From assembly GCA_964057225.1 (NCBI GenBank), contig OZ059899.1:19468001-19532000 (forward strand): a DNA stretch of 64,000 nucleotides. The letters are read 5' to 3'. The notes under the pieces are model-generated. The model worked only from the letters and a program-made list of their open reading frames with translations. It had not been told where the DNA came from and ran no database searches. The translations under genes were made by a program, and so were the position numbers. This document shows, one piece after another, positions 1 through 64,000 of the stretch. The stretch's first letter is position 1. Every line of letters begins with the position of its first letter. This DNA comes from Auanema rhodensis. Taxonomy: Eukaryota; Animalia; Nematoda.

Positions 1-171
1 TGTACATGGAAACTCAACATACACTAATGCATCATTTTTCAAACGATCATAACTAATTTTTGTATTGAGCGTTTCTCAATGTAGTATAGTGCATTCGATG
101 CGGATTTTTAAGCTGCGTCGATCTATGTTATCAGATTTGCGCTATCTTAAAAATGCACCGAGATATCAACT

Positions 172-193
172 GATATAAGTTCACACTTATATC
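172..193. other. Dyad in the 351-bp monomer (example copy): GATATAAGT-tcac-ACTTATATC
   Basis: Perfect 9-bp inverted repeat with a 4-nt spacer, present in most monomers. Confidence 0.95.
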
Positions 194-343
194 CTCGATT
201 TTCACCCTGAAGAATTAATTTTTTCGTTGAATAACATTGTCCATCGTCTTCGCCTTGAAAAAAGGAATCTAAAAACATCTACTTTTTGTGAAATTATTTT
301 GAAATTTTTAGGGAAAATTTTTGTCAAAAAGTTTTTGGAAGCA

Positions 344-371
344 ATGTTGAGTGTACATGGAAACTCAACAT
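344..371. other. Dyad in the 351-bp monomer (example copy): ATGTTGAGT-gtacatggaa-ACTCAACAT
   Basis: Perfect 9-bp inverted repeat with a 10-nt spacer, nearly invariant across both arms. Confidence 0.95.
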
Positions 372-13200: not shown

Positions 13201-13400
13201 TTTTTTTGTTGAATAACCTTGTCCATCGTCTTCACCTTAAAGAAAGGAATCTAAAAACATCTACTTTTTGTAAAATTATTTTGAAATTTTTAGGGAAAAT
13301 TTTTGTCAAAATGTTTTTGGAAGCAATGTTGAGTGTACATGGAAACTCAACATACACTAATGCATCATTTTTCAAACGATCATAACTAATTTTCGTATTA
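7216..13400 (+). repeat. Block duplication with an 11-monomer offset (3862 bp) in the left 351-bp arm
   Basis: Variant ORF translations recur at 7216/11078, 7567/11429 and 8269/12131. The same marker monomer also occurs at 3356 and 5111 (5- and 6-mer spacing). Boundaries are approximate. Confidence 0.8.
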
Positions 13401-31986: not shown

Positions 31987-31998
31987 ATTCAATTGAAT
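31987..31998. other. 12-bp palindrome ATTCAATTGAAT in the 182-bp monomer (example copy)
   Basis: Perfect palindrome. Some monomers carry the variants ATTCATTTGAAT or ATTCAATTAAAT. Confidence 0.93.
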
Positions 31999-32249
31999 CT
32001 AACATGAAATATTTTTTCGTTTTGAAAAGCATTGAATATCATTGTTCCTTGTAATATTGGATTTGAATATTGCTTCGTTAGTTTTATGATTTTTGCTACT
32101 ACATGTCATGTGTTTACTGCTCTAGCTGGTGTTCACTTTTTATGAGATTTTTCATCATCTTACAACAAATTCAATTGAATCTAACATGAAATATTTTTTC
32201 GTTTTGAAAAGCATTGAATATCATTGTACCTTGTAATATTGGATTTGAT

Positions 32250-40000: not shown

Positions 40001-41119
40001 TTGAATCTCATGTGAATTATTTTTTTTTTTAAAAAAGCATTGAATTTCATTGTTTCTTGTAATGATGGATTTGAATATTGCTTTGTTAGCTTTATGATTT
40101 TTGCTACTGTTTAGCTTCAGTTTGCTGCTCTAGCTGGTTTTCAATTTTTATGAGATTTTTCATCATCTTACAACAAATTCAATTGAATCTAACATGAATT
40201 ATTTTTTCGTTTTGAAAAGCATTGAATATCATTGTTCCTTATAATATTGGATTTGAATATTGCTTCGTTAGCTTTATGATTTTTGCTACTGTATAGCTTC
40301 AGTTTGCTGCTCTAGCTGGTTTTCAATTTTTATGAGATTTTTCATCATCTTACAACAAATTCATTTGAATCTAACATGAAATATTTTTTCGTTTTGAAAA
40401 GCATTGAATATCATTATTTCTTGTAATAATTGATTTGATTATTGCTTTGTTAGCTTTATGATTTTTGCTACTGTATAGCTTCAGTTTGCTGCTCTAGCTG
40501 GTTTTCAATTTTTATTAGATTTTTCACCATCTTGCAACAAATTCATTTGAATCTAATATGAACTATTTTTTCGTTTCAAATAGTAGTGAATATAATTGTT
40601 TCTTGTAATATTGGATTTGAATATTGCTTTGTTTGCTTTAAGATTTTTGCTACTACATGCCCTGTGTTTACTGCTCTAGCTAGTTTTCCATTTTTATGAG
40701 AATAATCGTCCTGTGACAACAAATTCATTTGAATCTAATATGAATTATTTTTTCGTTTTAAAAAGCATTGAATTTCATTGTTTCTTGTAATATTGGATTT
40801 GATTATTTCTTCGTTTGTTTTAAGATTTTGCTTTTGCATAGCTTCAGTGCTCTAGCTGGTTTTCCATTTTTATGAGATTTTTCATCATCTTACAAGAAAT
40901 TCAATTGAATCTAATATGAATTATTTTTTCGTTTTAAAAAGCATTGAATTTCATTGTTTCTTGTAATATTGGATTTGATTATTGCTTCGTTTGTTTTAAG
41001 ATTTTGCTTCTGCATAGCTTCAGTGCTCTAGCTGGTTTTCCATTTTTATGAGATTTTTCATCATCTTGCAACAAATTCATTTGAATCTAATATGAACTAT
41101 TTTTTCGTTTCAAATAGTA

Positions 41120-41149
41120 ATAAAAATAAGAGAAATAAACAAAGCAATA
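41120..41149. other. Orientation-switch (inversion) junction inside the 182-bp satellite
   Basis: The forward monomer stops at CAAATAGTA (41119). It is followed by 17 bp of A-rich filler (ATAAAAATAAGAGAAAT), then AAACAAAGCAATA, then continuous reverse-complement satellite from CGAAGCAATAATCAAATCC. Confidence 0.95.
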
Positions 41150-43564
41150 CGAAGCAATAATCAAATCCAATATTACAAGAAACAATGAAATTCAATGCTT
41201 TTTCAAACGAAAAAATAATTCATGTTATATTTAAATGAATTTGTTGTAAGATGATGAAAAATCTCATAAAAAGTGAAAACCAGCTAGAGCAGTAAACACA
41301 GCACATGTAGTAGCAAAAATCTTAAAGCTAACAAAGCAATAATCAAATCCAATATTACAAGAAGCAATGAAATTCAATGCTTTTTAAAACGAAAAAATAA
41401 TTCATGTTAGATTCAATTGAATTTCTTGTAAGATGATGAAAAATCTCATAAAAATGGAAAACCAGCTAGAGCACTGAAGCTATGCAGAAGCAAAATCTTA
41501 AAACAAACGAAGCAATAATCAAATCCAATATTACCAGAAACAATGAAATTCAATGCTTTTTAAAACGAAAAAAACAATTCATGTTAGATTTAAATGAATT
41601 TGTTGTAAAATGATGAAAAATCTCATAAAAAGTGAAAACCAGCTAGAGCAGTAAACACAGGACATGTAGTAGCAAAAATTTTAAAGCTAACAAAGCAATA
41701 ATCAAATCCAATATTACCAGAAACAATGAAATTCAATGCTTTTTAAAACGAAAAAACAATTCATGTTAGATTTAAATGAATTTCTTGTAAGATGATGAAA
41801 AATCTCATAAAAAGTGAAAACCAGCTAGAGCAGTAAACACAGGACATGTAGTAGCAAAAATTTTAAAGCTAACAAAGCAATAATCAAATCCAATATTACA
41901 AGAAACAATGAAATTCAATGCTTTTTCAAACGAAAAAATAATTCATGTTAGATTTAAATGAATTTGTTGTAAGATGATGAAAAATCTCATAAAAATGGAA
42001 AACCAGCTAGAGCACTGAAGCTATGCAGAAGGAAAATCTTAAAACAAACGAAGCAATAATCAAATCGAATATTACAAGAAACAATGATACTCACTACTAA
42101 ACGAAAAAATAGTTCATATTAGATTCAAATGAATTTGTAGCAAGATGATGAAAAATCTAATAAAAATGGAAAACCAGCTAGAGCAGTAAACACAGGGCAT
42201 GTAGTAGCAAAAATCATAAAGCTAACGAAGCAATATTCAAATCCATCATTACAAGAAACAATGATATTCAATGCTTCTTAAAAAGAAAAAATAATTCATA
42301 TTAGATTCAAATGAATTTGTTGTCACAGGACTATTATTCTCATAAAAATGGAAAACTAGCTAGAGCAGTAAACACAGGGCATGTAGTAGCAAAAATCTTA
42401 TAACTATCAAAGTAATATTCAAATCCAATATTACAAGAAACAATGATATTCACTACTATTTGAAACGAAAAAATAGTTCATATTAGATTCAAATGAATTT
42501 GTTGCAAGATTATGAAAAATCTAATAAAAATTGAAAACTAGCTAGAGCAGTAAACACAGGGCATATAGTAGCAAAAATCTTATAACTATCAAAGTAATAT
42601 TCAAATCCAATATTACAAGAAACAATTATATTCACTACTATTTGAAACGAAAAAATAGTTCATATTAGATTCAAATGAATTTGTTGCAAGATTATGAAAA
42701 ATCTCATAATAATAGAAAACCAGCTAAAGCAGCAAACTGAAGCTATGCAGAAGCAAAAATGTTAAAGGTAACAAAGCAATATTCAAATCCATCATTACAA
42801 GAAACAATGAAATTCAATGCTTTTTAAAAAAAAAAAATTCATATTAGATTCAAATGAATTTGTTGTCACAGGACGATTATTCTCATAAAAATGGAAAACT
42901 AGCTAGAGCAGTAAACACAGGGCATGTAGTAGCAAAAATCTTAAAGCAAACAAAGCAATATTCAAATCCAATATTACAAGAAACAATTATATTCACTACT
43001 ATTTGAAACGAAAAAATAGTTCATATTAGATTCAAATGAATTTGTTGCAAGATGGTGAAAAATCTAATAAAAATTGAAAACCAGCTAGAGCAGCAAACTG
43101 AAGCTATACAGTAGCAAAAATCATAAAGCTAACAAAGCAATATTCAAATCAATTATTACAAGAAACAATGATATTCAATGCTTTTCAAAACGAAAAAATA
43201 TTTCATCTTAGATTCAATTGAATTTGTTGTAAGATTATGAAAAATCTAATAAAAAGTGAAAACCAGCTAAAGCAGCAAACTGAAGCTATGCAGAAGCAAA
43301 AATGTTAAAGGTAACAAAGCAATATTCAAATCAATTATTACAAGAAACAATGATATTCAATGCTTTTCAAAACGAAAAAATAATTCATCTTAGATTCAAT
43401 TGAATTTGTTGTAAGATTATGAAAAATCTAATAAAAAGTGAAAACCAGCTAAAGCAGCAAACTGAAGCTATGCAGAAGCAAAAATCATAAAGCTAACGAA
43501 TCAATATTCAAATCCATCATTACAAGAAACAATGAAATTCAATGCTTTTCAAAAAAAAAATTCA
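41137..43564 (-). repeat. 182-bp satellite, reverse orientation (about 13 more heterogeneous monomers)
   Basis: Reverse complements of the forward motifs (CCAGCTAGAGCAG, CAAATCCAATATTACAAG, AATCTCATAAAA) recur every ~170-182 bp. Confidence 0.98.
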
Positions 43565-43617
43565 GGATCTAGTGCAGTTTTTCCCCCCCCCCCCGCCTAA
43601 GCCCCGCCCCTTTTGCC
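43565..43617 (+). repeat. Left terminal inverted repeat of the MITE
   Basis: Pairs with 43733-43786. Near-perfect over 43571-43617, with 2 mismatches in the outer 6 bp. Confidence 0.92.
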
Positions 43618-43732
43618 AAACGGTGCATACTTTTTGTCAGCCTGTATAATTTTAAACCAGCGGGAGACATACCTTTCAGAACGGGGGGTTTGGGGGGTTT
43701 ACCCCCCATTCCCGATGAACTGTGTGCATTTC

Positions 43733-43786
43733 GGCAAAAGGGGCGGGGCTTAGGGCCGGGGGGGGGGGAAAAACTGCACTTGAGCC
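43733..43786 (-). repeat. Right terminal inverted repeat of the MITE
   Basis: GGCAAAAGGGGCGGGGCTTAGGGCC(G11)AAAAACTGCACTTGAGCC, the reverse complement of the left end. Confidence 0.92.
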
Positions 43787-44153
43787 GAAAATTCTCATAA
43801 AAAGTGAAAACCAGCTAGAGCAGTAAACACAGGACATGTAGTAGCAAAAATTTTAAAGCTAACAAAGCAATAATCAAATCCAATATTACAAGAAACAATG
43901 AAATTCAATGCTTTTTCAAACGAAAAAATAATTCATGTTAGATTTAAATGAATTTGTTGTAAGATGATCAAAAATCTCATAAAAAGTGAAAACCAGCTAG
44001 AGCAGTAAACACAGCACATGTAGTAGCAAAAATCTAAAAGCTAACAAAGCAATAATCAAATCCAATATTACAAGAAACATAGAAATTCAATGCTTTTTAA
44101 AACGAAAAAATAATTCATATTAGATTCAATTGAATTTGTTGTCACATGACGAT
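43787..44153 (-). repeat. 182-bp satellite, reverse orientation (2 monomers between the MITE and the right 351-bp arm)
   Basis: Satellite resumes at GAAAATTCTCATAAAAAGTG and ends at GTCACATGACGAT (44153). Confidence 0.97.
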
Positions 44154-44249
44154 AAGTATAAGTGTGAACTTATATCAGTTGATATCTCGGTTCCTTTTTA
44201 AGCTAGCGCATATCTGATAACATAGATCGACGCAGCTTAAAAATCCGCA

Positions 44250-47200
44250 TCAAAAGCACTATATTACATTGAAAAACGCTCAATACAAAAATTAGTTATG
44301 ATCGTTTGAAAAATGATGCATTAGTGTATGTTGAGTTTCCATGTACACTCAACATTGCTTCCAAAAACATTTTGACAAAAATTTTCCCGAAAAATTTCAG
44401 AATAATTGCACAAAAAGTAGATGTTTTTAGATTCCTTTTTTCAAGGCAAAGACGATGGACAATGTTATTCAACGAAAAAATTAATTCTTCAGGGTGAAAA
44501 TTGAGGATATAAGTGTGAACTTATATCAGTTGATATCTCGGTGCATTTTCAAGCTAGCGCAAATCTGATAACACAGATCGACGCAGCTTAAAAATCCGCA
44601 TCGAATGCACTATACAACATTGAGAAACGCTTAATACAAAAATTAGTTATGATCGTTTGAAAAATGATGCATTAGTGTATGTTGACTTTCCATGTACACT
44701 CAACATTGCTTCCAAAAACATTTTGACAAAAATTTTCCCGGAAAATTTCGAAATAAATTCGCAAAAAGTAGATGTTTTTAGATTCCTTTTTTCAAGGCAA
44801 AGACGATGGACAATGTTATTCAACGAAAAAATTAATTCTGCAGGGTGAAAATCGAGGATATAAGTGTGAACTTATATCAGTTGATATCTCGGTGCATTTT
44901 TAAGCTAGCGGAAATCTGATAACATAGATCGACGCAGCTTAAAAATCCGCATCAAAAGCACTATATTACATTGAAAAACGCTCAATACAAAAATTAGTTA
45001 TGATCGTTTGAAAAATGATGCATTAGTGTATGTTGAGTTTCCATGTACACTCAACATTGCTTCCAAAAACATTTTGACAAAAATTTTCCCGAAAAATTTC
45101 AGAATAATTGCACAAAAAGTAGATGTTTTTAGATTCCTTTTTTCAAGGCAAAGACGATGGACAATGTTATTCAACGAAAAAATTAATTCTTCAGGGTGAA
45201 AATTGAGGATATAAGTGTGAACTTATATCAGTTGATATCTCGGTGCATTTTCAAGCTAGCGCAAATCTGATAACACAGATCGACGCAGCTTAAAAATCCG
45301 CATCGAATGCACTATACAACATTGAGAAACGCTTAATACAAAAATTAGTTATGATCGTTTGAAAAATGATGCATTAGTGTATGTTGAGTTTCCATGTACA
45401 CTCAACATAGCTTCCAAAAACATTTTGACAAAAATTTTTCCGAAAAATTTCGAAATAAATTCGCAAAAAGTAGATGTTTTTAGATTCCTTTTTTCAAGGC
45501 AAAGACGATGGACAATGTTATTCAACGAAAAAATTAATTCTGCAGGGTGAAAATCGAGGATATAAGTGTGAACTTATATCAGTTGATATCTCGGTGCATT
45601 TTTAAGCTAGCGGAAATCTGATAACACAGATCGACGCAGCTTAAAAATCCGCATCGAATGCACTATACTGCATTGAGAAACGCTTATTACAAAAGTTAGT
45701 TATGATCGTTTGAAAAATGATGCATTAGTGTATGTTGAGTTTCCATGTACACTCAACATTGCTTCCAAAAACATTTTGACAAAAATTTTTCCGAAAAATT
45801 TTAAAATAATTTCGCAAAAAGTCGATGTTTTTAGATTTCTTTTTTCAAGGCAAAGACGATAGACAATGTTATTCAACGAAAAAATTATTTCTGCAGGGTG
45901 AAAATCGAGGATATAAGTGTGAACTTATATCAGTTGATATCTCGGTGCATTTTTAAGCTAGCGCAAATCTGATAACACAGATCGACGCAGCTTAAAAATC
46001 CGCATCGAATGCACTATACTACATTGAGAAACGCTTGATACAAAAATTAGGTATGATCGTTTGAAAAATGATGCATTAGTGTATGTTGAGTTTCCATGTA
46101 CACTCAACATTGCTTCCAAAAACATTTTGACAAAAATTTTTCCGAAAAATTTTAAAATAATTTCGCGAAAATTAGATGTTTTTAGATTCCTTTTTTCAAG
46201 GCAAAGACGATGGACAATGTTATTCAACGAAAAAATTATTTCTGCAGGGTGAAAATCGAGGATATAAGTGTGAACTTATATCAGTTGATATCTCGGTGCA
46301 TTTTTAAGCTAGCGCAAATCTGATAACACAGATCGACGCAGCTTAAAAATCCGCATCGAATGCACTATACAACATTGAGAAACGCTCAATACAAAAATTA
46401 GTTATGATCGTTTGAAAAATGATGCATTAGTGTATGTTGAGTTTCCATGTACACTCAACATTGCTTCCAAAAACATTTTGATAAAAATTTTTCCGAAAAA
46501 TTTCAAAATAATTTCGCGAAAAGTAGATGTTTTTAGATTCCTTTTTTCAAGGCAAAGACGATGGACAATGTTATTCAACGAAAAAATTATTTCTGCAGGG
46601 TGAAAATCGAGGATATAAGTGTGAACTTATATCAGTTGATATCTCGGTGCATTTTTAAGCTAGCGCAAATCTGATAACACAGATCGACGCAGCTTAAAAA
46701 TCCGCATCGAATGCACTATATTACATTGAAAAACGCTCAATACAAAAATTAGTTATGATCGTTTGAAAAATGATGCATTAGTGTATGTTGAGTTTCCATG
46801 TACACTCAACATTGCTTCCAAAAACATTTTGATAAAAATTTTTCCGAAAAATTTCAAAATAATTTCGCGAAAAGTAGATGTTTTTAGATTCCTTTTTTCA
46901 AGGCAAAGACGATGGACAATGTTATTCAACGAAAAAATTATTTCTGCAGGGTGAAAATTGAGGATATAAGTGTGAACTTATATCAGTTGATATCTCGGTG
47001 CATTTTTAAGCTAGCGCAAATCTGATAACACAGATCGACGCAGCTTAAAAATCCGCATCGAATGCACTATATTACATTGAAAAACGCTCAATACAAAAAT
47101 TAGTTATGATCGTTTGAAAAATGATGCATTAGTGTATGTTGAGTTTCCATGTACACTCAACATTGCTTCCAAAAACATTTTGACAAAAATTTTCCCGAAA

Positions 47201-49500
47201 AATTTCAGAATAATTGCACAAAAAGTAGATGTTTTTAGATTCCTTTTTTCAAGGCAAAGACGATGGACAATGTTATTCAACGAAAAAATTAATTCTTCAG
47301 GGTGAAAATTGAGGATATAAGTGTGAACTTATATCAGTTGATATCTCGGTGCATTTTCAAGCTAGCGCAAATCTGATAACACAGATCGACGCAGCTTAAA
47401 AATCCGCATCGAATGCACTATACAACATTGAGAAACGCTTAATACAAAAATTAGTTATGATCGTTTGAAAAATGATGCATTAGTGTATGTTGACTTTCCA
47501 TGTACACTCAACATTGCTTCCAAAAACATTTTGACAAAAATTTTCCCGAAAAATTTCGAAATAAATTCGCAAAAAGTAGATGTTTTTAGATTCCTTTTTT
47601 CAAGGCAAAGACGATGGACAATGTTATTCAACGAAAAAATTAATTCTGCAGGGTGAAAATCGAGGATATAAGTGTGAACTTATATCAGTTGATATCTCGG
47701 TGCATTTTTAAGCTAGCGGAAATCTGATAACATAGATCGACGCAGCTTAAAAATCCGCATCAAAAGCACTATATTACATTGAAAAACGCTCAATACAAAA
47801 ATTAGTTATGATCGTTTGAAAAATGATGCATTAGTGTATGTTGAGTTTCCATGTACACTCAACATTGCTTCCAAAAACATTTTGACAAAAATTTTCCCGA
47901 AAAATTTCAGAATAATTGCAAAAAAAGTAGATGTTTTTAGATTCCTTTTTTCAAGGCAAAGACGATGGACAATGTTATTCAACGAAAAAATTAATTCTTC
48001 AGGGTGAAAATTGAGGATATAAGTGTGAACTTATATCAGTTGATATCTCGGTGCATTTTCAAGCTAGCGCAAATCTGATAACACAGATCGACGCAGCTTA
48101 AAAATCCGCATCGAATGCACTATACAACATTGAGAAACGCTTAATACAAAAATTAGTTATGATCGTTTGAAAAATGATGCATTAGTGTATGTTGAGTTTC
48201 CATGTACACTCAACATAGCTTCCAAAAACATTTTGACAAAAATTTTTCCGAAAAATTTCGAAATAAATTCGCAAAAAGTAGATGTTTTTAGATTCCTTTT
48301 TTCAAGGCAAAGACGATGGACAATGTTATTCAACGAAAAAATTAATTCTGCAGGGTGAAAATCGAGGATATAAGTGTGAACTTATATCAGTTGATATCTC
48401 GGTGCATTTTTAAGCTAGCGGAAATCTGATAACACAGATCGACGCAGCTTAAAAATCCGCATCGAATGCACTATACTGCATTGAGAAACGCTTATTACAA
48501 AAGTTAGTTATGATCGTTTGAAAAATGATGCATTAGTGTATGTTGAGTTTCCATGTACACTCAACATTGCTTCCAAAAACATTTTGACAAAAATTTTTCC
48601 GAAAAATTTTAAAATAATTTCGCAAAAAGTCGATGTTTTTAGATTTCTTTTTTCAAGGCAAAGACGATGGACAATGTTATTCAACGAAAAAATTATTTCT
48701 GCAGGGTGAAAATCGAGGATATAAGTGTGAACTTATATCAGTTGATATCTCGGTGCATTTTTAAGCTAGCGCAAATCTGATAACACAGATCGACGCAGCT
48801 TAAAAATCCGCATCGAATGCACTATACTACATTGAGAAACGCTTGATACAAAAATTAGGTATGATCGTTTGAAAAATGATGCATTAGTGTATGTTGAGTT
48901 TCCATGTACACTCAACATTGCTTCCAAAAACATTTTGACAAAAATTTTTCCGAAAAATTTTAAAATAATTTCGCGAAAATTAGATGTTTTTAGATTCCTT
49001 TTTTCAAGGCAAAGACGATGGACAATGTTATTCAACGAAAAAATTATTTCTGCAGGGTGAAAATCGAGGATATAAGTGTGAACTTATATCAGTTGATATC
49101 TCGGTGCATTTTTAAGCTAGCGCAAATCTGATAACACAGATCGACGCAGCTTAAAAATCCGCATCGAATGCACTATACAACATTGAGAAACGCTCAATAC
49201 AAAAATTAGTTATGATCGTTTGAAAAATGATGCATTAGTGTATGTTGAGTTTCCATGTACACTCAACATTGCTTCCAAAAACATTTTGATAAAAATTTTT
49301 CCGAAAAATTTCAAAATAATTTCGCGAAAAGTAGATGTTTTTAGATTCCTTTTTTCAAGGCAAAGACGATGGACAATGTTATTCAACGAAAAAATTATTT
49401 CTGCAGGGTGAAAATCGAGGATATAAGTGTGAACTTATATCAGTTGATATCTCGGTGCATTTTTAAGCTAGCGCAAATCTGATAACACAGATCGACGCAG
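44250..49500 (-). repeat. 8-mer higher-order repeat (2808 bp, about 2 copies) with an internal dimer duplication, right 351-bp arm
   Basis: The variant series at 44306, 44657, 45008, 45359, 46061, 46412 recurs at 47114, 47465, 47816, 48167, 48869, 49220. Confidence 0.88.
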
Positions 49501-52500
49501 CTTAAAAATCCGCATCGAATGCACTATACTGCATTGAGAAACGCTTATTACAAAAGTTAGTTATGATCGTTTGAAAAATGATGCATTAGTGTATGTTGAG
49601 TTTCCATGTACACTCAACATTGCTTCCAAAAACATTTTGACAAAAATTTTTCCGAAAAATTTTAAAATAATTTCGCAAAAAGTCGATGTTTTTAGATTTC
49701 TTTTTTCAAGGCAAAGACGATGGACAATGTTATTCAACGAAAAAATTATTTCTGCAGGGTGAAAATCGAGGATATAAGTGTGAACTTATATCAGTTGATA
49801 TCTCGGTGCATTTTTAAGCTAGCGCAAATCTGATAACACAGATCGACGCAGCTTAAAAATCCGCATCGAATGCACTATACTACATTGAGAAACGCTCAAT
49901 ACAAAAATTAGTTATGATCGTTTGAAAAATGATGCATTAGTGTATGTTGAGTTTCCATGTACACTCAACATTGCTTCCAAAAACATTTTGACAAAAATTT
50001 TTCCGAAAAATTTCGAAAAAATTTCGCGAAAAAGAGATGTTTTTAGATTCCTTTTTTCAAGGCAAAGACGATGGACAATGTTATTCAACAAAAAAATTAT
50101 TTCTGCAGGGTGAAAATCGAGGATATAAGTGTGAACTTATATCAGTTGATATCTCGGTGCATTTTTAAGCTAGCGCAAATCTGATAGCACAGATCGACGC
50201 AGCTTAAAAATCCGCATCGAATGCACTATACTACATTGAGAAACGCTCAATACAAAAATTAGTTATGATCGTTTGAAAAATGATGCATTAGTGTATGTTG
50301 AGTTTCCATGTACACTCAACATTGCTTCCAAAAACATTTTGACAAAAATTTTTCCGAAAAATTTCGAAAAAATTTCGCGAAAAAGAGATGTTTTTAGATT
50401 CCTTTTTTTAAGGCAAAGACGATGGACAATGTTATTCAACAAAAAAATTATTTCTGCAGGGTGAAAATCGAGGATATAAGTGTGAACTTATATCAGTTGA
50501 TATCTCGGTGCATTTTTAAGCTAGCGCAAATCTGATAACACAGATCGACGCAGCTTAAAAATCCGCATCGAATGCACTATACTACATTGAAAAACGCTTA
50601 ATACAAAAATTAGTTATGATCGTTTGAAAAAAGATGCATTAGTGTATGTTGAGTTTCCATGTACACTCAACATTGCTTCCAAAAACATTTTGACAAAAAT
50701 TTTTCCGAAAAATTTCGAGAAAATTTCGCGAAAAGTAGATGTTTTTAGATTCCTTTTTTCAAGGCAAAGACGATGGACAATGTTATTCAACGAAAAAATT
50801 ATTTCTGCAGGGTGAAAATCGAGGATATAAGTGTGAACTTATATTAGTTGATATCTCGGTGCATTTTTAAGCTAGCGCAAATCTGATAACACAGATCGAC
50901 GCAGCTTAAAAATCCGCATCGAATGCATTATACAACATTGAGAAACGCTTGATACAAAAATTAGTTATGATCGTTTGAAAAATGATGCATTAGTGTATGT
51001 TGAGTTTCCATGTACACTCAACATTGCTTCCAAAAACATTTTGACAAAAATTTTTCCGAAGAATTTCAAAATAATTTCGCGAAAAGTAGATGTTTTTAGA
51101 TTCCTTTTTTCAAGGCAAAGACGATGGACAATGTTATTCAACGAAAAAATTAATTCTCCAGAGTGAAAATCGAGGATATAAGTGTGAACTTATATCAGTT
51201 GATATCTCGGTGCAATTTTAAGCTAGCGCAAATCTGATAATACAGATCGACGCAGCTTAAAAATCCGCATCGAATGCATTATACTGCATTGAGAAACGCT
51301 TAATACAAAAGTTAGTTATGATCGTTTGAAAAATGATGCATTAGTGTATGTTGAGTTTCCATGTACACTCAACATTGCTTCCAAAAACATTTTGACAAAA
51401 ATTTTTCCGAAAAATTTCAAAATAATTTCGCAAAAAGTAGATGTTTTTAGATTCCTTTTTTCAAGGCAAAGACGATGGACAATGTTATTCAACGAAAAAA
51501 TTAATTCTGCAGGGTGAAAATCGAGGATATAAGTGTGAACTTATATCAGTTGATATCTCGGTGCATTTTTAAGCTAGCGCAAATCTGATAACACAGATCG
51601 ACGCAGCTTAAAAATCCGCATCGAATGCACTATATTACATTGAAAAACGCTCAATACAAAAATTAGTTATGATCGTTTGAAAAATGATGCATTAGTGTAT
51701 GTTGAGTTTCCATGTACACTCAACATTGCTTCCAAAAACATTTTGACAAAAATTTTTCCGAAAAATTTCAAAATAATTTCGCAAAAATTAGATGTTTTTA
51801 GATTCCTTTTTTCAAGGCAAAGACGATGGACAATGTTATTCAACGAAAAAATTATTTCTGCAGGGTGAAAATCGAGGATATAAGTGTGAACTTATATTAG
51901 TTGATATCTCGGTGCATTTTTAAGCTAGCGCAAATCTGATAACACAGATCGACGCAGCTTAAAAATCCGCATCGAATGCACTATACTACATTGAGAAACG
52001 CTTGATACAAAAATTAGGTATGATCGTTTGAAAAATGATGCATTAGTGTATGTTGAGTTTCCATGTACACTCAACATTGCTTCCAAAAACATTTTGACAA
52101 AAATTTTTCCGAAAAATTTCGAAAAAATTTCGCGAAAAGTAGATGTTTTTAGATTCCTTTTTTCAAGGCAAAGACGATGGACAATGTTATTCAACGAAAA
52201 AATTATTTCTGCAGGGTGAAAATCGAGGATATAAGTGTGAACTTATATTAGTTGATATCTCGGTGCATTTTTAAGCTAGCGCAAATCTGATAACACAGAT
52301 CGACGCAGCTTAAAAATCCGCATCGAATGCACTATACTACATTGAGAAACGCTTGATACAAAAATTAGGTATGATCGTTTGAAAAATGATGCATTAGTGT
52401 ATGTTGAGTTTCCATGTACACTCAACATTGCTTCCAAAAACATTTTGACAAAAATTTTTCCGAAAAATTTCGAAAAAATTTCGCGAAAAGTAGATGTTTT

Positions 52501-55500
52501 TAGATTCCTTTTTTCAAGGCAAAGACGATGGACAATGTTATTCAACGAAAAAATTATTTCTGCAGGGTGAAAATCGAGGATATAAGTGTGAACTTATATT
52601 AGTTGATATCTCGGTGCATTTTTAAGCTAGCGCAAATCTGATAACACAGATCGACGCAGCTTAAAAATCCGCATCGAATGCACTATACAACATTGAGAAA
52701 CGCTTGATACAAAAATTAGTTATGATCGTTTGAAAAATGATGCATTAGTGTATGTTGAGTTTCCATGTACACTCAACATTGCTTCCAAAAACATTTTGAC
52801 AAAAATTTTTCCGAAGAATTTCAAAATAATTTCGCGAAAAGTAGATGTTTTTAGATTCCTTTTTTCAAGGCAAAGACGATGGACAATGTTATTCAACGAA
52901 AAAATTAATTCTCCAGAGTGAAAATCGAGGATATAAGTGTGAACTTATATCAGTTGATATCTCGGTGCAATTTTAAGCTAGCGCAAATCTGATAATACAG
53001 ATCGACGCAGCTTAAAAATCCGCATCGAATGCATTATACTGCATTGAGAAACGCTTAATACAAAAGTTAGTTATGATCGTTTGAAAAATGATGCATTAGT
53101 GTATGTTGAGTTTCCATGTACACTCAACATTGCTTCCAAAAACATTTTGACAAAAATTTTTCCGAAAAATTTCAAAATAATTTCGCAAAAAGTAGATGTT
53201 TTAAGATTCCTTTTTTCAAGGCAAAGACGATGGACAATGTTATTCAACGAAAAAATTAATTCTGCAGGGTGAAAATCGAGGATATAAGTGTGAACTTATA
53301 TCAGTTGATATCTCGGTGCATTTTTAAGCTAGCGCAAATCTGATAACACAGATCGACGCAGCTTAAAAATCCGCATCGAATGCACTATACAACATTGAGA
53401 AACGCTTAATACAAAAGTTAGTTATGATCGTTTGAAAAATGATGCATTAGTGTATGTTGAGTTTCCATGTACACTCAACATTGCTTCCAAAAACATTTTG
53501 ACAAAAATTTTTCCGAAAAATTTCAAAATAATTTCGCAAAAATTAGATGTTTTTAGATTCCTTTTTTCAAGGCAAAGACGATGGACAATGTTATTCAACG
53601 AAAAAATTAATTCTGCAGGGTGAAAATCGAGGATATAAGTGTGATCTTATATCAGTTGATATCTCGGTGCATTTTTAAGCTAGCGCAAATCTGATAACAC
53701 AGATCGACGCAGCTTGAAAATCCGCATCGAATGCACTATACAACATTGAGAAACGCTTGATACAAAAATTAGTTATGATCGTTTGAAAAATGATGCATTA
53801 GTGTATGTTGAGTTTCCATGTACACTCAACATTGCTTCCAAAAACATTTTGACAAAAATTTTTCCGAAAAATTTCGAGAAAATTTTGCGAAAAGTAGATG
53901 TTTTTAGATTCCTTTTTCCAAGGCAAAGACGATGGACAATGTTATTCAACGAAAAAATTATTTCTGCAGGGTGAAAATCGAGGATATAAGTGTGAACTTA
54001 TATTAGTTGATATCTCGGTGCATTTTTAAGCTAGCGCAAATCTGATAACACAGATCGACGCAGCTTAAAAATCCGCATCGAATGCAATATACAACATTGA
54101 GAAACGCTTGATACAAAAATTAGTTATGATCGTTTGAAAAATGATGCATTAGTGTATGTTGAGTTTCCATGTACACTCAACATTGCTTCCAAAAACATTT
54201 TGACAAAAATTTTTCCGAAGAATTTCAAAATAATTTCGCGAAAAGTAGATGTTTTTAGATTCCTTTTTTCAAGGCAAAGACGATGGACAATGTTATTCAA
54301 CGAAAAAATTAATTCTCCAGAGTGAAAATCGAGGATATAAGTGTGAACTTATATTAGTTGATATCTCGGTGCATTTTTAAGCTAGCGCAAATCTGATAAT
54401 ACAGATCGACGCAGCTTAAAAATCCGCATCGAATGCATTATACTGTATTGAGAAACGCTTAATACAAAAGTTAGTTATGATCGTTTGAAAAATGATGCAT
54501 TAGTGTATGTTGAGTTTCCATGTACACTCAACATTGCTTCCAAAAACATTTTGACAAAAATTTTTCCGAAAAATTTCAAAATAATTTCGCAAAAAGTAGA
54601 TGTTTTTAGATTCCTTTTTTCAAGGCAAAGACGATGGACAATGTTATTCAACGAAAAAATTAATTCTCCAGAGTGAAAATCGAGGATATAAGTGTGAACT
54701 TATATCAGTTGATATCTCGGTGCAATTTTAAGCTAGCGCAAATCTGATAATACAGATCGACGCAGCTTAAAAATCCGCATCGAATGCACTATACAACATT
54801 GAGAAACGCTCAATACAAAAATTAGTTATGATCGTTTGAAAAATGATGCATTAGTGTATGTTGAGTGTCCATGTACACTCAACATTGCTTCCAAAAACAT
54901 TTTGATAAAAATTTTTCCGAAAAATTTCAAAATAATTTCGCGAAAAGTAGATGTTTTTAGATTCCTTTTTTCAAGGCAAAGACGATGGACAATGTTATTC
55001 AACGAAAAAATTATTTCTGCAGGGTGAAAATCGAGGATATAAGTGTGAACTTATATCAGTTGATATCTCGGTGCATTTTTAATCTAGCGCAAATCTGATA
55101 ATACAGATCGACGCAGCTTAAAAATCCGCATCGAATGCACTATACTGCATTGAGAAACGCTTAATACAAAAGTTAGTTATGATCGTTTGAAAAATGATGC
55201 ATTAGTGTATGTTGAGTGTCCATGTACACTCAACATTGCTTCCAAAAACATTTTGATAAAAATTTTTCCGAAAAATTTCAAAATAATTTCGCGAAAAGTA
55301 GATGTTTTTAGATTCCTTTTTTCAAGGCAAAGACGATGGACAATGTTATTCAACGAAAAAATTAATTCTGCAGGGTGAAAATCGAGGATATAAGTGTGAA
55401 CTTATATCAGTTGATATCTCGGTGCATTTTTAAGCTAGCGCAAATCTGATAACACAGATCGACGCAGCTTAAAAATCCGCATCGAATGCACTATACAACA

Positions 55501-58500
55501 TTAAGAAACGCTTAATACAAAAATTAGTTATGATCGTTTGAAAAATGATGCATTAGTGTATGTTGAGTTTCCATGTACACTCAACATTGCTTCCAAAAAC
55601 ATTTTGACAAAAATTTTTCCGAAAAATTTTAAAATAATTTCGCAAAAAGTAGATGTTTTTGGATCCCTTTTTTCAAGGCAAAGACGATGGACAATGTTAT
55701 TCAACGAAAAAATTAATTCTGTAGGGTGAAAATCGAGGATATAAGTGTGAACTTATATCAGTTGATATCTCGGTGCATTTTTAAGCTAGCGCAAATCTGA
55801 TAACACAGATCGACGCAGCTTAAAAATCCGCATCGAATGCACTATACTACATTGAAAAACGCTTGATACAAAAATTAGGTATGATCGTTTGAAAAAAGAT
55901 GCATTAGTGTATGTTGAGTTTCCATGTACACTCAACATTGCTTCCAAAAACATTTTTACAAAAATTTTTCCGAAAAATTTCGAAATAATTTCGCAAAAAG
56001 TAGATGTTTTTAGATTCCTTTTTTCAAGGCAAAGACGATGGACAATGTTATTCAACGAAAAAATTAATTCTGTAGGGTGAAAATCGAGGATATAAGTGTG
56101 AACTTATATCAGTTGATATCTCGGTGCATTTTTAAGCTAGCGCAAATCTGATAACACAGATCGACGCAGCTTAAAAATCCGCATCGAATGCACTATACAA
56201 CATTAAGAAACGCTTAATACAAAAGTTAGTTATGATCGTTTGAAAAATGATGCATTAGTGTATGTTGAGTTTCCATGTACACTCAACATTGCTTCCAAAA
56301 ACATTTTGACAAAAATTTTTCCGAAAAATTTTAAAATAATTTCGCAAAAAGTAGATGTTTTTGGATCCCTTTTTTCAAGGCAAAGACGATGGACAATGTT
56401 ATTCAACGAAAAAATTAATTCTGTAGGGTGAAAATCGAGGATATAAGTGTGAACTTATATCAGTTGATATCTCGGTGCATTTTTAAGCTAGCGCAAATCT
56501 GATAACACAGATCGACGCAGCTTAAAAATCCGCATCGAATGCACTATACAACATTAAGAAACGCTTAATACAAAAGTTAGTTATGATCGTTTGAAAAATG
56601 ATGCATTAGTGTATGTTGAGTTTCCATGTACACTCAACATTGCTTCCAAAAACATTTTGACAAAAATTTTTCCGAAAAATTTTAAAATAATTTCGCAAAA
56701 AGTAGATGTTTTTAGATTCCTTTTTTCAAGGCAAAGACGATGGACAATGTTATTCAACGAAAAAATTAATTCTGTAGGGTGAAAATCGAGGATATAAGTG
56801 TGAACTTATATCAGTTGATATCTCGGTGCATTTTTAAGCTAGCGCAAATCTGATAACACAGATCGACGCAGCTTAAAAATCCGCATCGAATGCACTATAC
56901 AACATTAAGAAACGCTTAATACAAAAGTTAGTTATGATCGTTTGAAAAATGATGCATTAGTGTATGTTGAGTTTCCATGTACACTCAACATTGCTTCCAA
57001 AAACATTTTGACAAAAATTTTTCCGAAAAATTTTAAAATAATTTCGCAAAAAGTAGATGTTTTTAGATTCCTTTTTTCAAGGCACAGACGATGGACAATG
57101 TTATTCAACGAAAAAATTAATTCTGTAGGGTGAAAATCGAGGATATAAGTGTGAACTTATATCAGTTGATATCTCGGTGCATTTTTAAGCTAGCGCAAAT
57201 CTGATAACACAGATCGACGCAGCTTAAACATCCGCATCGAATGCACTATACTACATTGAGAAACGCTTGATACAAAAATTAGGTATGATCGTTCGAAAAA
57301 TGATGCATTAGTGTATGTTGAGTTTCCATGTACACTCAACATTGCTTCCAAAAACATTTTGACAAAAATTTTTCCGAAAAATTTCGAAAAAATTTCGCGA
57401 AAAGTAGATGTTTTTAGATTCCTTTTTTCAAGGCAAAGACGATGGACAATGTTATTCAACGAAAAAATTAATTCTGTAGGGTGAAAATCGAGGATATAAG
57501 TGTGAACTTATATCAGTTGATATCTCGGTGCATTTTTAAGCTAGCGCAAATCTGATAACACAGATCGACGCAGCTTAAAAATCCGCATCGAATGCACTAT
57601 ACAACATTGAGAAACGCTCAATACAAAAATTAGTTATGATCGTTTGAAAAATGATGCATTAGTGTATGTTGAGTTTCCATGTACACTCAACATTGCTTCC
57701 AAAAACATTTTGATAAAAATTTTTCCGAAAAATTTCAAAATAATTTCGCGAAAAGTAGATGTTTTTAGATTCCTTTTTTCAAGGCAAAGACGATGGACAA
57801 TGTTATTCAACGAAAAAAATAATTCTGCAGGGTGAAAATTGAGGATATAAGTGTAAACTTATATCAGTTGATATCTCGGTGCATTTTTAAGCTAGCGCAA
57901 ATCTGATAATACAGATCGACGCAGCTTAAAAATCCGCATCGAATGCACTATACTGCATTGAGAAACGCTTAATACAAAAGTTAGTTATGATCGTTTGAAA
58001 AATGATGCATTAGTGTATGTTGAGTTTCCATGTACACTCAACATAGCTTCCAAAAACATTTTGACAAAAATTTTTCCGAAAAATTTCAAAATAATTTCGC
58101 GAAAAGTAGATGTTTTTAGATTCCTTTTTTCAAGGCAAAGACGATGGACAATGTTATTCAACGAAAAAATTAATTCTTCAGGGTGAAAATCGAGGATCAA
58201 AGTGTGAACTTATATCAGTTGATATCTCGGTGCATTTTTAAGCTAGCGCAAATCTGATAAAACAGATCGACGCAGCTTAAAAATCCGCATCGAATGCACT
58301 ATACTGCATTGAGAAACGCTTAATACAAAAGTTAGTTATGATCGTTTGAAAAATGATGCATTAGTGTATGTTGAGTTTCCATGTACACTCAACATTGCTT
58401 CCAAAAACATTTTGACAAAAATTTTTCCGAAAAATTTTAAAATAATTTCGCAAAAAGTAGATGTTTTTAGATTCCTTTTTTCAAGGCAAAGACGATGGAC

Positions 58501-58599
58501 AATGTTATTCAACGAAAAAATTATTTCTGCAGGGTGAAAATCGAGGATATAAGTGTGAACTTATATCAGTTGATATCTCGGTGCATTTTAGAGCTAGCG

Positions 58600-61500
58600 C
58601 AAATCTGATAACACAGATCGACGCAGCTTAAAAATCCGCATCGAATGCACTATACAACATTGAGAAACGCTTAATACAAAAATTAGTTATGATCGTTTGA
58701 AAAATGATGCATTAGTGTATGTTGAGTTTCCATGTACACTCAACATTGCTTCCAAAAACATTTTGACAAAAATTTTTCCGAAAAATTTCAAAATAATTTC
58801 GCGAAAAGTAGATGTTTTTAGATTCCTTTTTCCAAGGCAAAGACGATGGATAATGTTATTCAACGAAAAAATTATTTCTGCAGGGTGAAAATCGAGGATA
58901 TAAGTGTGAACTTATATCACTTGAAATCTCGGTGCATTTTTAAGCTAGCGCAAATCTGATAACACAGATCAACGCAGCTTAAAAATCCGCATCGAATGCA
59001 CTATACAACATTGAGAAACGCTTAATACAAAAATTAGTTATGATCGTTTGAAAAATGATGCATTAGTGTATGTTGAGTTTCCATGTACACTCAACATTGC
59101 TTCCAAAAACATTTTGACAAAAATTTTTTCGAAAAATTTTAAAATAATTTCGCAAAAAGTAGATGTTTTTAGATTCCTTATTTCAAGGCAAAGACGATGG
59201 ACAATGTTATTCAACGAAAAAATTATTTCTGCAGGGTGAAAATCGAGGATATAAGTGTGAACTTATATCAGTTGATATCTCGGTGCATTTTTAAGCTAGC
59301 GCAAATCTGATAACACAGATCGACGCAGCTTGAAAATCCGCATCAAATGCACTATACAACATTGAGAAACGCTTAATACAAAAATTAGTTATGATCGTTT
59401 GAAAAATGATGCATTAGTGTATGTTGAGTTTCCATGTACACTCAACATTGCTTCCAAAAACATTTTGACAAAAATTTTTCCGAAAAATTTCGAGAAAATT
59501 TCGCAAAAACTAGATGTTTTTAGATTCCTTTTTTCAAGGCATAGACGATGGACAATGTTATTCAACGAAAAAATTATTTCTGCAGGGTGAAAATCGAGGA
59601 TATAAGTGTGAACTTATATCAGTTGATATCTCGGTGCATTTTTAAGCTAGCGCAAATCTGATAACACAGATCGACGCAGCTTAAAAATCCGCATCGAATG
59701 CACTATACTGCATTGAGAAATGCTTAATACAAAAGTTAGTTATGATCGTTTGAAAAATGATGCATTAGTGTATGTTGAGTTTCCATGTACACTCAACATT
59801 GCTTCCAAAAACATTTTGACAAAAATTTTTCCGAAAAATTTTAAAATAATTTCGCAAAAAGTAGATGTTTTTAGATTCCTTTTTTCAAGGCAAAGACGAT
59901 GGACAATGTTATTCAACGAAAAAATTATTTCTGCAGGGTGAAAATCGAGGATATAAGTGTGAACTTATATCAGTTGATATCTCGGTGCATTTTTCAGCTA
60001 GCGCAAATCTGATAACACAGATCGACGCAGCTTAAAAATCCGCATCGAATGCACTATACAACATTGAGAAACGCTTGATACAAAAATTAGTTATGATCGT
60101 TTGAAAAATGATGCATTAGTGTATGTTGAGTTTCCATGTACACTCAACATTGCTTCCAAAAACATTTTGACAAAAATTTTTCCGAAAAATTTCAAAATAA
60201 TTTCGCGAAAAGTAGATGTTTTTAGATTCCTTTTTTCAAGGCAAAGACGATGGACAATGTTATTCAACGAAAAAATTATTTCTGCAGGGTGAAAATCGAG
60301 GATATAAGTGTGAACTTATATCAGTTGAAATCTCGGTGCATTTTTAAGCTAGCGCAAATCTGATAACACAGATCAACGCAGCTTAAAAATCCGCATCGAA
60401 TGCACTATACAACATTGAGAAACGCTTAATACAAAAATTAGTTATGATCGTTTGAAAAATGATGCATTAGTGTATGTTGAGTTTCCATGTACACTCAACA
60501 TTGCTTCCAAAAACATTTTGACAAAAATTTTTTCGAAAAATTTTAAAATAATTTCGCAAAAAGTAGATGTTTTTAGATTCCTTATTTCAAGGCAAAGACG
60601 ATGGACAATGTTATTCAACGAAAAAATTAATTCTGCAGGGTGAAAATCAAGGATATAAGTGTGAACTTATATCAGTTGATATCTCGGTGCATTTTCAAGC
60701 TAGCGCAAATCTGATAACACAGATCGACGCAGCTTAAAAATCCGCATCGAATGCACTATACTACATTGAGAAACGCTTGATACAAAAATTAGGTATGATC
60801 GTTTGAAAAATGATGCATTAGTGTATGTTGAGTTTCCATGTACACTCAACATTGCTTCCAAAAACATTTTGACAAAAATTTTTCCGAAAAATTTCGAAAA
60901 AATTTCGCAAAAAGTAGATGTTTTTAGATTTTTTTTTTCAAGGCAAAGACGATGGACAATGTTATTCAACGAAAAAATTATTTCTGCAGGGTGAAAATCG
61001 AGGATATAAGTGTGAACTTATATCAGTTGATATCTCGGTGCATTTTTAAGCTAGCGCAAATCTGATAACACAGATCGACGCAGCTTGAAAATCCGCATCA
61101 AATGCACTATACAACAGTGAGAAACGCTTAATACAAAAATTAGTTATGATCGTTTGAAAAATGATGCATTAGTGTATGTTGAGTTTCCATGTACACTCAA
61201 CATTGCTTCCAAAAACATTTTGACAAAAATTTTTCCGAAAAATTTCGAAAAAATTTCGCAAAAAGTAAATGTTTTTAGATTCCTTTTTTCAAGGCAAAGA
61301 CGATGGACAATGTTATTCAACGAAAAAATTATTTCTGCAGGGTGAAAATCGAGGATATAAGTGTGAACTTATATCAGTTGATATCTCGGTGCATTTTTAA
61401 GCTAGCGCAAATCTGATAACACAGATCGACGCAGCTTAAAAATCCGCATCGAATGCACTATACTGCATTGAGAAACGCTTAATACAAAAGTTAGTTATGA

Positions 61501-62100
61501 TCGTTTGAAAAATGATGCATTAGTGTATGTTGAGTTTCCATGTACACTCAACATTGCTTCCAAAAACATTTTGACAAAAATTTTTCCGAAAAATTTTAAA
61601 ATAATTTCGCAAAAAGTAGATGTTTTTAGATTCCTTTTTTCAAGGCAAAGACGATGGACAATGTTATTCAACGAAAAAATTATTTCTGCAGGGTGAAAAT
61701 CGAGGATATAAGTGTGAACTTATATCAGTTGATATCTCGGTGCATTTTTAAGCTAGCGCAAATCTGATAACACAGATCAACGCAGCTTAAAAATCCGCAT
61801 CGAATGCACTATACAACATTGAGAAACGCTTAATACAAAAATTAGTTATGATCGTTTGAAAAATGATGCATTAGTGTATGTTGAGTTTCCATGTACACTC
61901 AACATTGCTTCCAAAAACATTTTGACAAAAATTTTTTCGAAAAATTTTAAAATAATTTCGCAAAAAGTAGATGTTTTTAGATTCCTTATTTCAAGGCAAA
62001 GACGATGGACAATGTTATTCAACGAAAAAATTAATTCTGCAGGGTGAAAATCAAGGATATAAGTGTGAACTTATATCAGTTGATATCTCGGTGCATTTTT
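58600..62100 (-). repeat. 4-mer periodicity (1404 bp) in the right 351-bp arm
   Basis: The monomer carrying TTTTTTCGAAAA plus CCTTATTTC recurs at ORF starts 59048, 60452 and 61856. Confidence 0.8.
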
Positions 62101-64000
62101 AAGCTAGCGCAAATCTGATAACACAGATCGACGCAGCTTGAAAATCCGCATCAAATGCACTATACAACATTGAGAAACGCTTAATACAAAAATTAGTTAT
62201 GATCGTTTGAAAAATGATGCATTAGTGTATGTTGAGTTTCCATGTACACTCAACATTGCTTCCAAAAACATTTTGACAAAAATTTTTCCGAAAAATTTCG
62301 AAAAAATTTCGCAAAAAGTAAATGTTTTTAGATTCCTTTTTTCAAGGCAAAGACGATGGACAATGTTATTCAACGAAAAAATTAATTCTGCAGGGTGAAA
62401 ATCGAGGATATAAGTGTGAACTTATATCAGTTGATATCTCGGTGCATTTTTAAGCTAGCGCAAATCTGATAACACAGATCGACGCAGCTTGAAAATCCGC
62501 ATCAAATGCACTATACAACATTGAGAAACGCTTAATACAAAAATTAGTTATGATCGTTTGAAAAATGATGCATTAGTGTATGTTGAGTTTCCATGTACAC
62601 TCAACATTGCTTCCAAAAACATTTTGACAAAAATTTTTCCGAAAAATTTTAAAATAATTTCGCAAAAAGTAGATGTTTTTAGATTCCTTTTTTCAAGGCA
62701 AAGACGATGGACAATGTTATTCAACGAAAAAATTATTTCTGCAGGGTGAAAATCGAGGATATAAGTGTGAACTTATATCAGTTGAAATCTCGGTGCATTT
62801 TTAAGCTAGCGCAAATCTGATAACACAGATCGACGCAGCTTAAAAATCCGCATCGAATGCACTATACAACATTGAGAAACGCTTAATAAAAAAATTAGTT
62901 ATGATCGTTTGAAAAATGAAGCATTAGTGTATGTTGAGTTTCCATGTACACTCAACATAGCTTCCAAAAACATTTTGACAAAAATTTTTCCGAAAAATTT
63001 TAAAATAATTTCGCAAAAAGTAGATGTTTTTAGATTCCTTTTTTCAAGGCAAAGACGATGGACAATGTTATTCAACGAAAAAATTATTTCTGCAGGGTGA
63101 AAATCGAGGATATAAGTGTGAACTTATATCAGTTGAAATCTCGGTGCAATTTTAAGCTAGCGCAAATCTGATAATACAGATCGACGCAGCTTAAAAATCC
63201 GCATCGAATGCACTATACTGCATTGAGAAACGCTTAATACAAAAGTTAGTTATGATCGTTTGAAAAATGATGCATTAGTGTATGTTGAGTTTCCATGTAC
63301 ACTCAACATTGCTTCCAAAAACATTTTGACAAAAATTTTTCCGAAAAATTTCGAAAAAATTTTGCAAAAAGTAGATGTTTTTAGATTCTTTTTTTCAAGG
63401 CAAAGACGATGGACAATGTTATTCAACGAAAAAATTATTTCTGCAGGGTGAAAATCGAGGATATAAGTGTGAACTTATATCAGTTGATATCTCGGTGCAT
63501 TTTTAAGCTAGCGCAAATCTGATAACACAGATCGACGCAGCTTAAAAATCCGCATCGAATGCACTATACTGCATTGAGAAACGCTTAATACAAAAGTTAG
63601 TTATGATCGTTTGAAAAATGATGCATTAGTGTATGTTGAGTTTCCATGTACACTCAACATTGCTTCCAAAAACATTTTGACAAAAATTTTTCCGAAAAAT
63701 TTTAAAATAATTTCGCAAAAAGTAGATGTTTTTAGATTCCTTTTTTCAAGGCAAAGACGATGGACAATGTTATTCAACGAAAAATTTATTTCTGCAGGGT
63801 GAAAATCGAGGATATAAGTGTGAACTTATATCAGTTGAAATCTCGGTGCATTTTTAAGCTAGCGCAAATCTGATAACACAGATCGACGCAGCTTAAAAAT
63901 CCGCATCGAATGCACTATACAACATTGAGAAACGCTTAATAAAAAAATTAGTTATGATCGTTTGAAAAATGAAGCATTAGTGTATGTTGAGTTTCCATGT

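Follow-up and report, generated by a model that had tools for sequence, protein, structure and literature searches.

A recurrent two-satellite dyad in Auanema rhodensis, probably a copied rearrangement scar, with a copy-specific flip at a transposon

The stretch of DNA analyzed here, all 64,000 bp of which we call the window, spans positions 19,468,001–19,532,000 of contig OZ059899.1 (C7; 21.47 Mb) in assembly GCA_964057225.1 of the nematode Auanema rhodensis (A. rhodense; assembly total 180.9 Mb), and lies 1.9–2.0 Mb from the contig end. It is occupied by two tandem satellites, with monomers of 351 and 182 bp, each of which changes strand across a single short axis, an arrangement that we refer to as a dyad. 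We consider it probable that this dyad is a copied rearrangement scar and not a working chromosomal element, and that the copy in the window has recently undergone a flip of its own beside a transposon. This reading builds on the observed anatomy of the dyad, on how its copies are related, and on the polarity of the flip.

Layout, symmetry and common descent of the dyads

From left to right, the window reads 351> 182> <182 <351, with a 38-bp filler between the two 182-bp arms. The left 351-bp array occupies positions 1–31,900 on the plus strand (90.9 copies at 95% matches by Tandem Repeats Finder, TRF) and stops in a monomer cut at position 321, at a left junction designated type LJ-A (31,880–31,925, plus strand), which was defined by sequence and by a 39-nt pattern spanning it. 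The long 182-bp arm follows on the plus strand (31,901–41,110, by TRF and by monomer searches with the Basic Local Alignment Search Tool, BLAST; the TRF call is 31,950–41,110, with 50.4 copies at 91% matches) and leads to the axis, type A, where 38 bp of non-repeat filler (41,111–41,148) lie between head-to-head arms cut at monomer positions 73 and 129. Minus-strand 182-bp repeats (41,152–43,561 and 43,788–44,149 by TRF) continue to the right junction, type RJ-A (44,130–44,175, listed on the plus strand; sequence and monomer BLAST), at which a 351-bp monomer is cut at position 190, and the second 351-bp array fills positions 44,157–64,000 on the minus strand (TRF, 56.5 copies at 97% matches). 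The 182-bp island measures 12,256 bp (31,901–44,156), its minus half (41,149–44,156) being broken by a 222-bp miniature inverted-repeat transposable element (MITE).

BLAST with reference monomers recovered 91 plus and 57 minus monomers of the 351-bp satellite, and 51 plus and 16 minus monomers of the 182-bp satellite, in orientation blocks without exception, and the AT skew switches sign at 40–42 kb, that is, at the axis. TRF, BLAST and AT skew therefore agree with a preliminary description of this DNA, which had claimed that both satellites flip orientation across one axis near 41.13 kb; the 12-kb 182-bp island that it reported is likewise borne out by the measured length.

The dyad is not a palindrome. 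We cut out all 351-bp monomers and compared them within and between arms, along mirror and same-order diagonals. Identity is 95.4% within the left arm, 96.6% within the right arm and 94.3% between arms; every monomer (148 of 148) has its nearest relative in its own arm, and none of the mirror diagonals exceeds the mean identity between arms (best 94.8%, as against 94.6% for same-order controls). The 182-bp arms are unequal in the window (9.2 kb vs 3.0 kb), and the outer junctions cut both repeats at differing phases, the 351-bp monomer at position 321 on the left and 190 on the right. The 351-bp arms thus have no mirror register, and since their monomers show no mirror order, the inverted homology of 20 kb or more on each side noted in the preliminary description amounts to one satellite family read on opposite strands: it holds at the level of the family, at about 94% in any register, and not as a mirror order of variants. 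Arms that mirror each other, as looked for in a regional centromere, were not found here; what was found is the absence of a mirror diagonal, arm-fixed variants and unequal junction phases.

Dyads were sought genome-wide with patterns spanning the junctions, and 180 kb around the C7 sites was annotated. The 39-nt LJ-A pattern occurs five times in the assembly, always on C7 and always on the plus strand, and a 40-nt RJ-A pattern four times, again all on C7; a 48-nt pattern across axis-A occurs 11 times (three on C3, three on C6 and five on C7), at 17–22 Mb. The layout 351> 182> <182 <351 is present six times on C7, at 17.40, 18.37, 19.50 (the window), 19.63, 20.46 and 20.79 Mb, with irregular spacings of 974, 1125, 136, 838 and 318 kb. 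Across these dyads, the long 182-bp arm is between 9 and 26 kb in length, the short arm measures 391–1048 bp in the five copies outside the window, and three junctions are replaced in paralogues (RJ-B, RJ-C and LJ-B), consistent with deletions.

Three monomer positions, 209 (A/C), 288 (T/C) and 309 (A/C), separate the left-arm 351-bp subfamily (A209/T288/A309) from the right-arm subfamily (C209/C288/C309), and these arm-specific alleles are kept at frequencies of 0.90–1.00 in all five other C7 dyads. Base-identical junctions and arm-specific variants common to the dyads mark them as copies of one event: the six C7 dyads descend from one ancestral structure by segmental duplication. The shared alleles further indicate that the 351-bp flanks were duplicated along with the unit, once the arms had become distinct subfamilies. 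Within 1.2 kb around the axis, C7 copies differ from one another by 0.2–1.9% and C3 copies by 0–0.7%, and C7 copies differ from C3 or C6 copies by 4.4–8%, a pattern indicating that the axis predates its spread to three contigs and that amplification within each contig is recent.

In all six C7 dyads, the head-to-head 351-bp switch coincides with a 182-bp island. Given common descent, however, these coincidences are one event counted six times and not independent associations. The repeated structural unit proposed in the preliminary description is real to the extent that six copies exist on C7, but it recurs by duplication, as the shared junctions and arm variants attest. A pattern for direct head-to-head 351-bp switches without an island, with a gap of 0–30 bp, found none, within the roughly 4% of junction geometries that it covers.

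Two of the dyads showed features of separate interest. At the sixth dyad, the joint (C7 20.80 Mb; L016:6614–6615) is nearly symmetric, with both arms cut within about 13 bp of one monomer position; its short arm runs about 68 bp past the axis-A cut, so that this joint is not a simple deletion of axis-A. In the first dyad, the minus 351-bp array (L003:6377–10000, C7 17,416,377 onwards) is broken by non-satellite DNA with 28–30-bp tandem repeats and AT-rich minisatellites, which is probably another mobile element. The left- and right-arm 351-bp variants could also be used throughout the repeat block to tell strands or arms apart.

A copy-specific inversion and its transposon

Between positions 40,747 and 43,564, the window is inverted, axis included, relative to all five C7 paralogues, and it is colinear with them on both sides. 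The inversion was mapped by megablast and with chains of 24- and 28-mers unique in both sequences, run against the five C7 paralogues; megablast of the inverted segment gave 97.2% over 3.2 kb, in minus orientation. The 2.8-kb segment takes in the axis-proximal 364 bp of the long 182-bp arm (40,747–41,110), the filler, and the minus-strand 182-bp repeats at 41,149–43,564 (TRF, BLAST, k-mer chains), which in the window copy derive from the ancestral long arm. Beyond the MITE (43,565–43,786), the minus-strand repeats at 43,787–44,156 are what is left of the distal part of the ancestral short arm and remain colinear with the paralogues (megablast, k-mer chains).

A three-way alignment with the 18.37-Mb copy, direct and as its reverse complement, placed the left crossover within the motif ATGAATT (40,740–40,746), in monomer phase. 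On the right, the last bases of the inverted segment are the reciprocal of ATGAATT and lead directly into the MITE, past which the 182-bp arm resumes 33 bp further on, with those 33 bp of arm missing. Of the two joints that an inversion by exchange would leave, the left one stays in phase within 7 bp; the right one starts at the reciprocal 7 bp but continues into the MITE, with the 33-bp loss.

The C3 and C6 copies supply the polarity. Beyond the breakpoint, 385 bp from the axis, they match the majority C7 form at 95–99% and the window at 75–89%, and this agreement with the majority form identifies the window's arrangement as the derived one. Around the axis, the window copy is only 0.2–0.4% different from its closest paralogues, indicating that the flip is young.

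The terminal repeats of the MITE family are present at about 17 loci in the assembly. Most family copies are 1.26 kb long, with terminal inverted repeats of about 57 bp and a DDE_Tnp_IS1595 (ISXO2/IS1595-type) reading frame, whose match to PF12762 (E = 2.3e-17; 63.9 bits, cut-off 27) is accompanied by a weak match to a zinc-ribbon domain, below its cut-off; we take this kind of DDE transposon to be the Merlin type of eukaryotic transposon. The window element, identified from its sequence, its family loci and its fold-back structure, is an internally deleted copy like one on C6 (MITE form, 222–231 bp) and aligns to both ends of the 1.26-kb copies at 93–97%. As a single strand, it is predicted to fold with −79 kcal/mol (z = −11.7), and it is the only family copy in any of the six C7 dyads.

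Three other family copies are flanked by 8-bp target-site duplications (TCCATGTA, ATTAATTT and AAATTTTA), and the window copy has none, since its two flanks come from different 182-bp arms, as expected of an element on a rearrangement joint. The end of the MITE coincides, to within a base or two, with a crossover point that was located independently, at the other joint; that this is due to chance is unlikely, the target being about 10 bp in a 12-kb island. A break at or by the MITE, repaired from the inverted 182-bp arm, would account for the right joint. Such an event could have been a homologous repair with a crossover beside a resident MITE; it could also have been an aberrant MITE insertion, in which the two ends were joined to two arms and the leftover ends annealed in phase.

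Members of this family have other links to the satellites. Several Merlin copies lie inside 351-bp monomers; the C1 copies, L030:1472–2735 among them, are clustered at 18.73–18.79 Mb, some only 5 bp apart, and further family loci are L041 and L042 (C6 17.64 Mb) and L039:1467–1693. Separately, the variant 182/351 junctions at C7 19.645 Mb (L009:5400–5640) and C7 20.484 Mb (L014:3560–3760), which belong to different dyads, end the 351-bp monomer at the identical nucleotide (after ...CTCAACATAC). This point directly follows the best-conserved part of the monomer, where the hairpin GTTGAGT-N10-ACTCAAC is found in 142 of 148 monomers, and the Merlin copy L030 is inserted in the same hairpin motif of a 351-bp monomer. 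The hairpin may be a fragile or preferred target site.

The germline repeat-block setting

The A. rhodense germline genome has been put at 180 Mb, and somatic cells are reported to lose about 61% of it, starting at the 12-cell stage (bioRxiv 10.64898/2026.08.27.747507). The same work reports terminal multi-megabase blocks of autosomal tandem repeats, with unit sizes of 167–504 bp, that are eliminated from all somatic cells (bioRxiv 10.64898/2026.08.27.747507). None of the four published A. rhodense fluorescence in situ hybridization (FISH) probes occurs in the window at up to four mismatches. In the assembly, the XT-2 probe has 30,199 matches with a 342-bp period, on contig C8, and the AT-1 probe has 138,553 matches with a 176-bp period; these matches mark the assembly as that of the A. 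rhodense germline.

A conserved 30-mer of the 351-bp monomer has 60,612 matches on one strand and 56,058 on the other, hence at least 116,670 copies genome-wide; the satellite amounts to 41 Mb or more, roughly 23% of all assembled sequence, and was seen on C1, C6 and C7. As the second huge autosomal repeat, with a monomer that lacks the AT-1 probe, it is probably the AT-2 repeat of the preprint. The window itself belongs to a terminal block of tandem repeats, on a contig of autosome type, and blocks of this kind are reported to be eliminated from somatic cells. The 182-bp satellite is a minor family, judging from the 1,408 occurrences of a 32-mer of its monomer in the assembly.

The G+C content is 31–33% in the 351-bp arrays and 26–30% in the island. 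Comparison of the 182-, 351- and 176-bp (AT-1) repeats revealed no relatedness among these families, and an Rfam search of the window from 30 to 46 kb returned no family. A dimeric origin of the 351-bp unit from 176-bp-like halves was rejected, its score lying below those of shuffles. On C5, at 913,839–931,870, an array of the 182-bp satellite runs on the plus strand for 18 kb or more, with an exact 32-mer variant of the C7 islands; the axis-A pattern was not found on C5 in the junction-pattern search of the assembly.

Origin of the dyad and comparison with known systems

The unflipped state of the axis can be studied in the 18.37-Mb copy, in which the 772-bp short arm has its best mirror match in a part of the long arm ending 56 bp before the axis, with an identity of 93.6%, compared with 87.8 ± 1.3% at 63 other registers. 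From this mirror-register match beside the axis in unflipped copies, we infer that the axis may be the diverged footprint of a fold-back-type inverted duplication.

The history that we favor would begin with such an old fold-back-type inverted duplication in the minor 182-bp satellite, leaving a head-to-head joint with a 38-bp filler. Next, presumably in that order, the island would have come to lie between two opposed 351-bp subfamilies that were already distinct. Large segmental duplications would then have amplified the whole unit into the six C7 copies, 0.13–1.1 Mb apart, at a time when the axis had already spread to two other contigs. Very recently, and in the window copy only, the central 2.8 kb would have been inverted by exchange between the inverted 182-bp arms; with the reciprocal joint at the Merlin-type MITE and 33 bp lost, this may have started from a break at or by the transposon that was repaired from the inverted arm.

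Several points weigh against parts of this history. The sixth C7 dyad has another, filler-less axis that could not be derived from axis-A. The mirror signal is weaker in the 17.40-Mb copy, reaching 91.0% at the same register, or about 2.6 standard deviations. The outer junctions are not mirror images, and a single fold-back for the whole dyad would need a later asymmetric deletion; such a fold-back with asymmetric deletion and the joining of two unrelated 351-bp blocks fit the junctions equally well. With regard to the setting, the equation of the 351-bp satellite with AT-2 draws on its size rank and the absence of the AT-1 probe, and somatic elimination of the window draws on the preprint's account of autosomal terminal blocks. 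The dyad's apparent lack of function is a reading of its descent and context, and the junctions and the flip are those of an assembled sequence.

A larger fold-back is possible, though we are inclined to doubt it. Here the entire dyad, 351-bp arms included, would stem from one fold-back of a 351>182> boundary, of the breakage-fusion-bridge type, and a later deletion would have removed most of one 182-bp arm together with the mirrored junction. Consistent with such an origin, both outer junctions read 351 then 182 on the same strand towards the axis, a mirror-register signal stands beside the axis, paralogues show junction-replacing deletions (RJ-B, RJ-C and LJ-B), and the site is near a chromosome end. 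Against it, the outer junctions are unmirrored in both the 351-bp position (321 vs 190) and the 182-bp phase, and the 351-bp arms, which show no mirror order, belong to separate subfamilies whose differences are fixed in every copy; an inversion joining two separate 351/182 boundaries would fit just as well.

It is very unlikely that the dyad is a working germline unit, with the 182-bp island between opposed 351-bp arrays serving as a meiotic microtubule-attachment or pairing site. The layout is retained in six C7 copies, and axis-A is found only on C3, C6 and C7, at 17–22 Mb. In Parascaris male meiosis, moreover, microtubules insert into germline-only heterochromatic chromosome tips (PMC9071541), and some A. 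rhodense repeat blocks have been speculated to act like pairing centers (bioRxiv 10.64898/2026.08.27.747507). The recurrence, however, is explained by duplication, given the shared junctions and the 0.2–1.9% divergence; junctions and arm lengths are freely lost or altered from copy to copy (short arm 391–1048 bp, long arm 9–26 kb), one copy has a flipped center and an inserted transposon, and the spacing is irregular, at 0.13–1.1 Mb. In Ascaris, DNA destined for elimination carries reduced CENP-A (PMC9071541). That the dyads on the C3, C6 and C7 arms are recognized in the germline as landmarks for pairing or "telokinetic" attachment, in DNA destined to be discarded, strikes us as most doubtful; if true, it would mean that a holocentric worm has localized, sequence-defined germline chromosome elements.

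An assembly artefact in this highly repetitive region, whether behind the orientation switches as such or only behind the 2.8-kb flip, is extremely improbable. The switches and the flip are known from the assembly, and the repeat blocks have only about 29-fold HiFi coverage, but most long reads map uniquely in the repeats (bioRxiv 10.64898/2026.08.27.747507). Three junction types recur in 4–11 diverged copies on up to three contigs, which is unlike assembler error, and the flip is shorter than a HiFi read, with one breakpoint marked by a unique MITE and the other joined cleanly in phase. A monocentric-type regional centromere, one per chromosome, is not supported: six dyads lie on one contig arm, and nematode chromosomes are holocentric (PMC9071541).

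If the dyad is a copied scar, the germline-only repeat blocks of A. rhodense are patchworks and not uniform arrays, in which an old scar with tens of kilobases of flanking satellite has been copied at a scale of hundreds of kilobases, its copies then diverging as arrays grew, stretches were deleted, transposons inserted and segments flipped locally. Such a structure is relevant to whether eliminated DNA has a germline role or is a loosely controlled refuse site in which changes of this sort accumulate. The three junction types, the arm-specific variants and the copy-specific flip provide markers for FISH, read checks and strain comparison. Satellite scars, segmental amplification and transposon-linked inversion are informative but of an ordinary kind, and it is the setting, germline-only DNA, that lends them interest.

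The preliminary description had proposed a (peri)centromere and drawn an analogy to fission yeast. The former does not fit a holocentric nematode host (PMC9071541) and a compartment of the eliminated kind, and the dyad has no bearing on centromere biology as first proposed. The analogy fails on anatomy. Its likeness is superficial, in that inverted arrays flank a center of about 12 kb, as the inverted imr/otr repeats flank the central core in fission yeast. The window's arms, however, are satellite arrays without mirror register or mirror copies, and its "core" is a head-to-head satellite junction made of two opposed arrays, not unique sequence; the host is holocentric, there are six copies on a chromosome arm, and DNA of this type is reported to be lost from somatic cells.

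The closest setting is that of the A. rhodense AT-1/AT-2 blocks. The window lies in a terminal multi-megabase block of an autosome-type contig, the X-type probe mapping elsewhere (C8); its 351- and 182-bp units fall within the reported 167–504 bp, and two repeats dominate the autosomes, of which the 351-bp satellite is one. That description does not include the flip, the dyad as a unit or the minor family of 182 bp; the preprint text mentions neither array orientation nor higher-order units (bioRxiv 10.64898/2026.08.27.747507).

Compared with fold-back or breakage-fusion-bridge scars, the window shares a head-to-head joint with a short filler, offset arms and a position near a chromosome end, and its paralogues share a diverged mirror copy beside the joint. 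Here, however, the mirror register does not reach 1 kb within the 182-bp arms, neither the outer junctions nor the 351-bp arms are mirrored, and the scar is an old one that was later amplified inside a larger unit.

The flip itself has two kinds of counterpart. Segments bounded by inverted repeats undergo "flip-flop" inversion, and inversions in Drosophila are associated with Foldback and Galileo elements. As in the former, the inverted segment of the window is bounded by inverted homologous arrays, with one joint in phase within 7 bp; as in the latter, a strongly self-pairing element with terminal inverted repeats sits exactly at one joint. In contrast to the transposon-associated cases, there is a single transposon copy and not one per breakpoint, the 8-bp target-site duplication is absent, and 33 bp are lost. 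Together, these features set the window's inversion apart both from a clean reciprocal exchange and from classical ectopic recombination between two elements.

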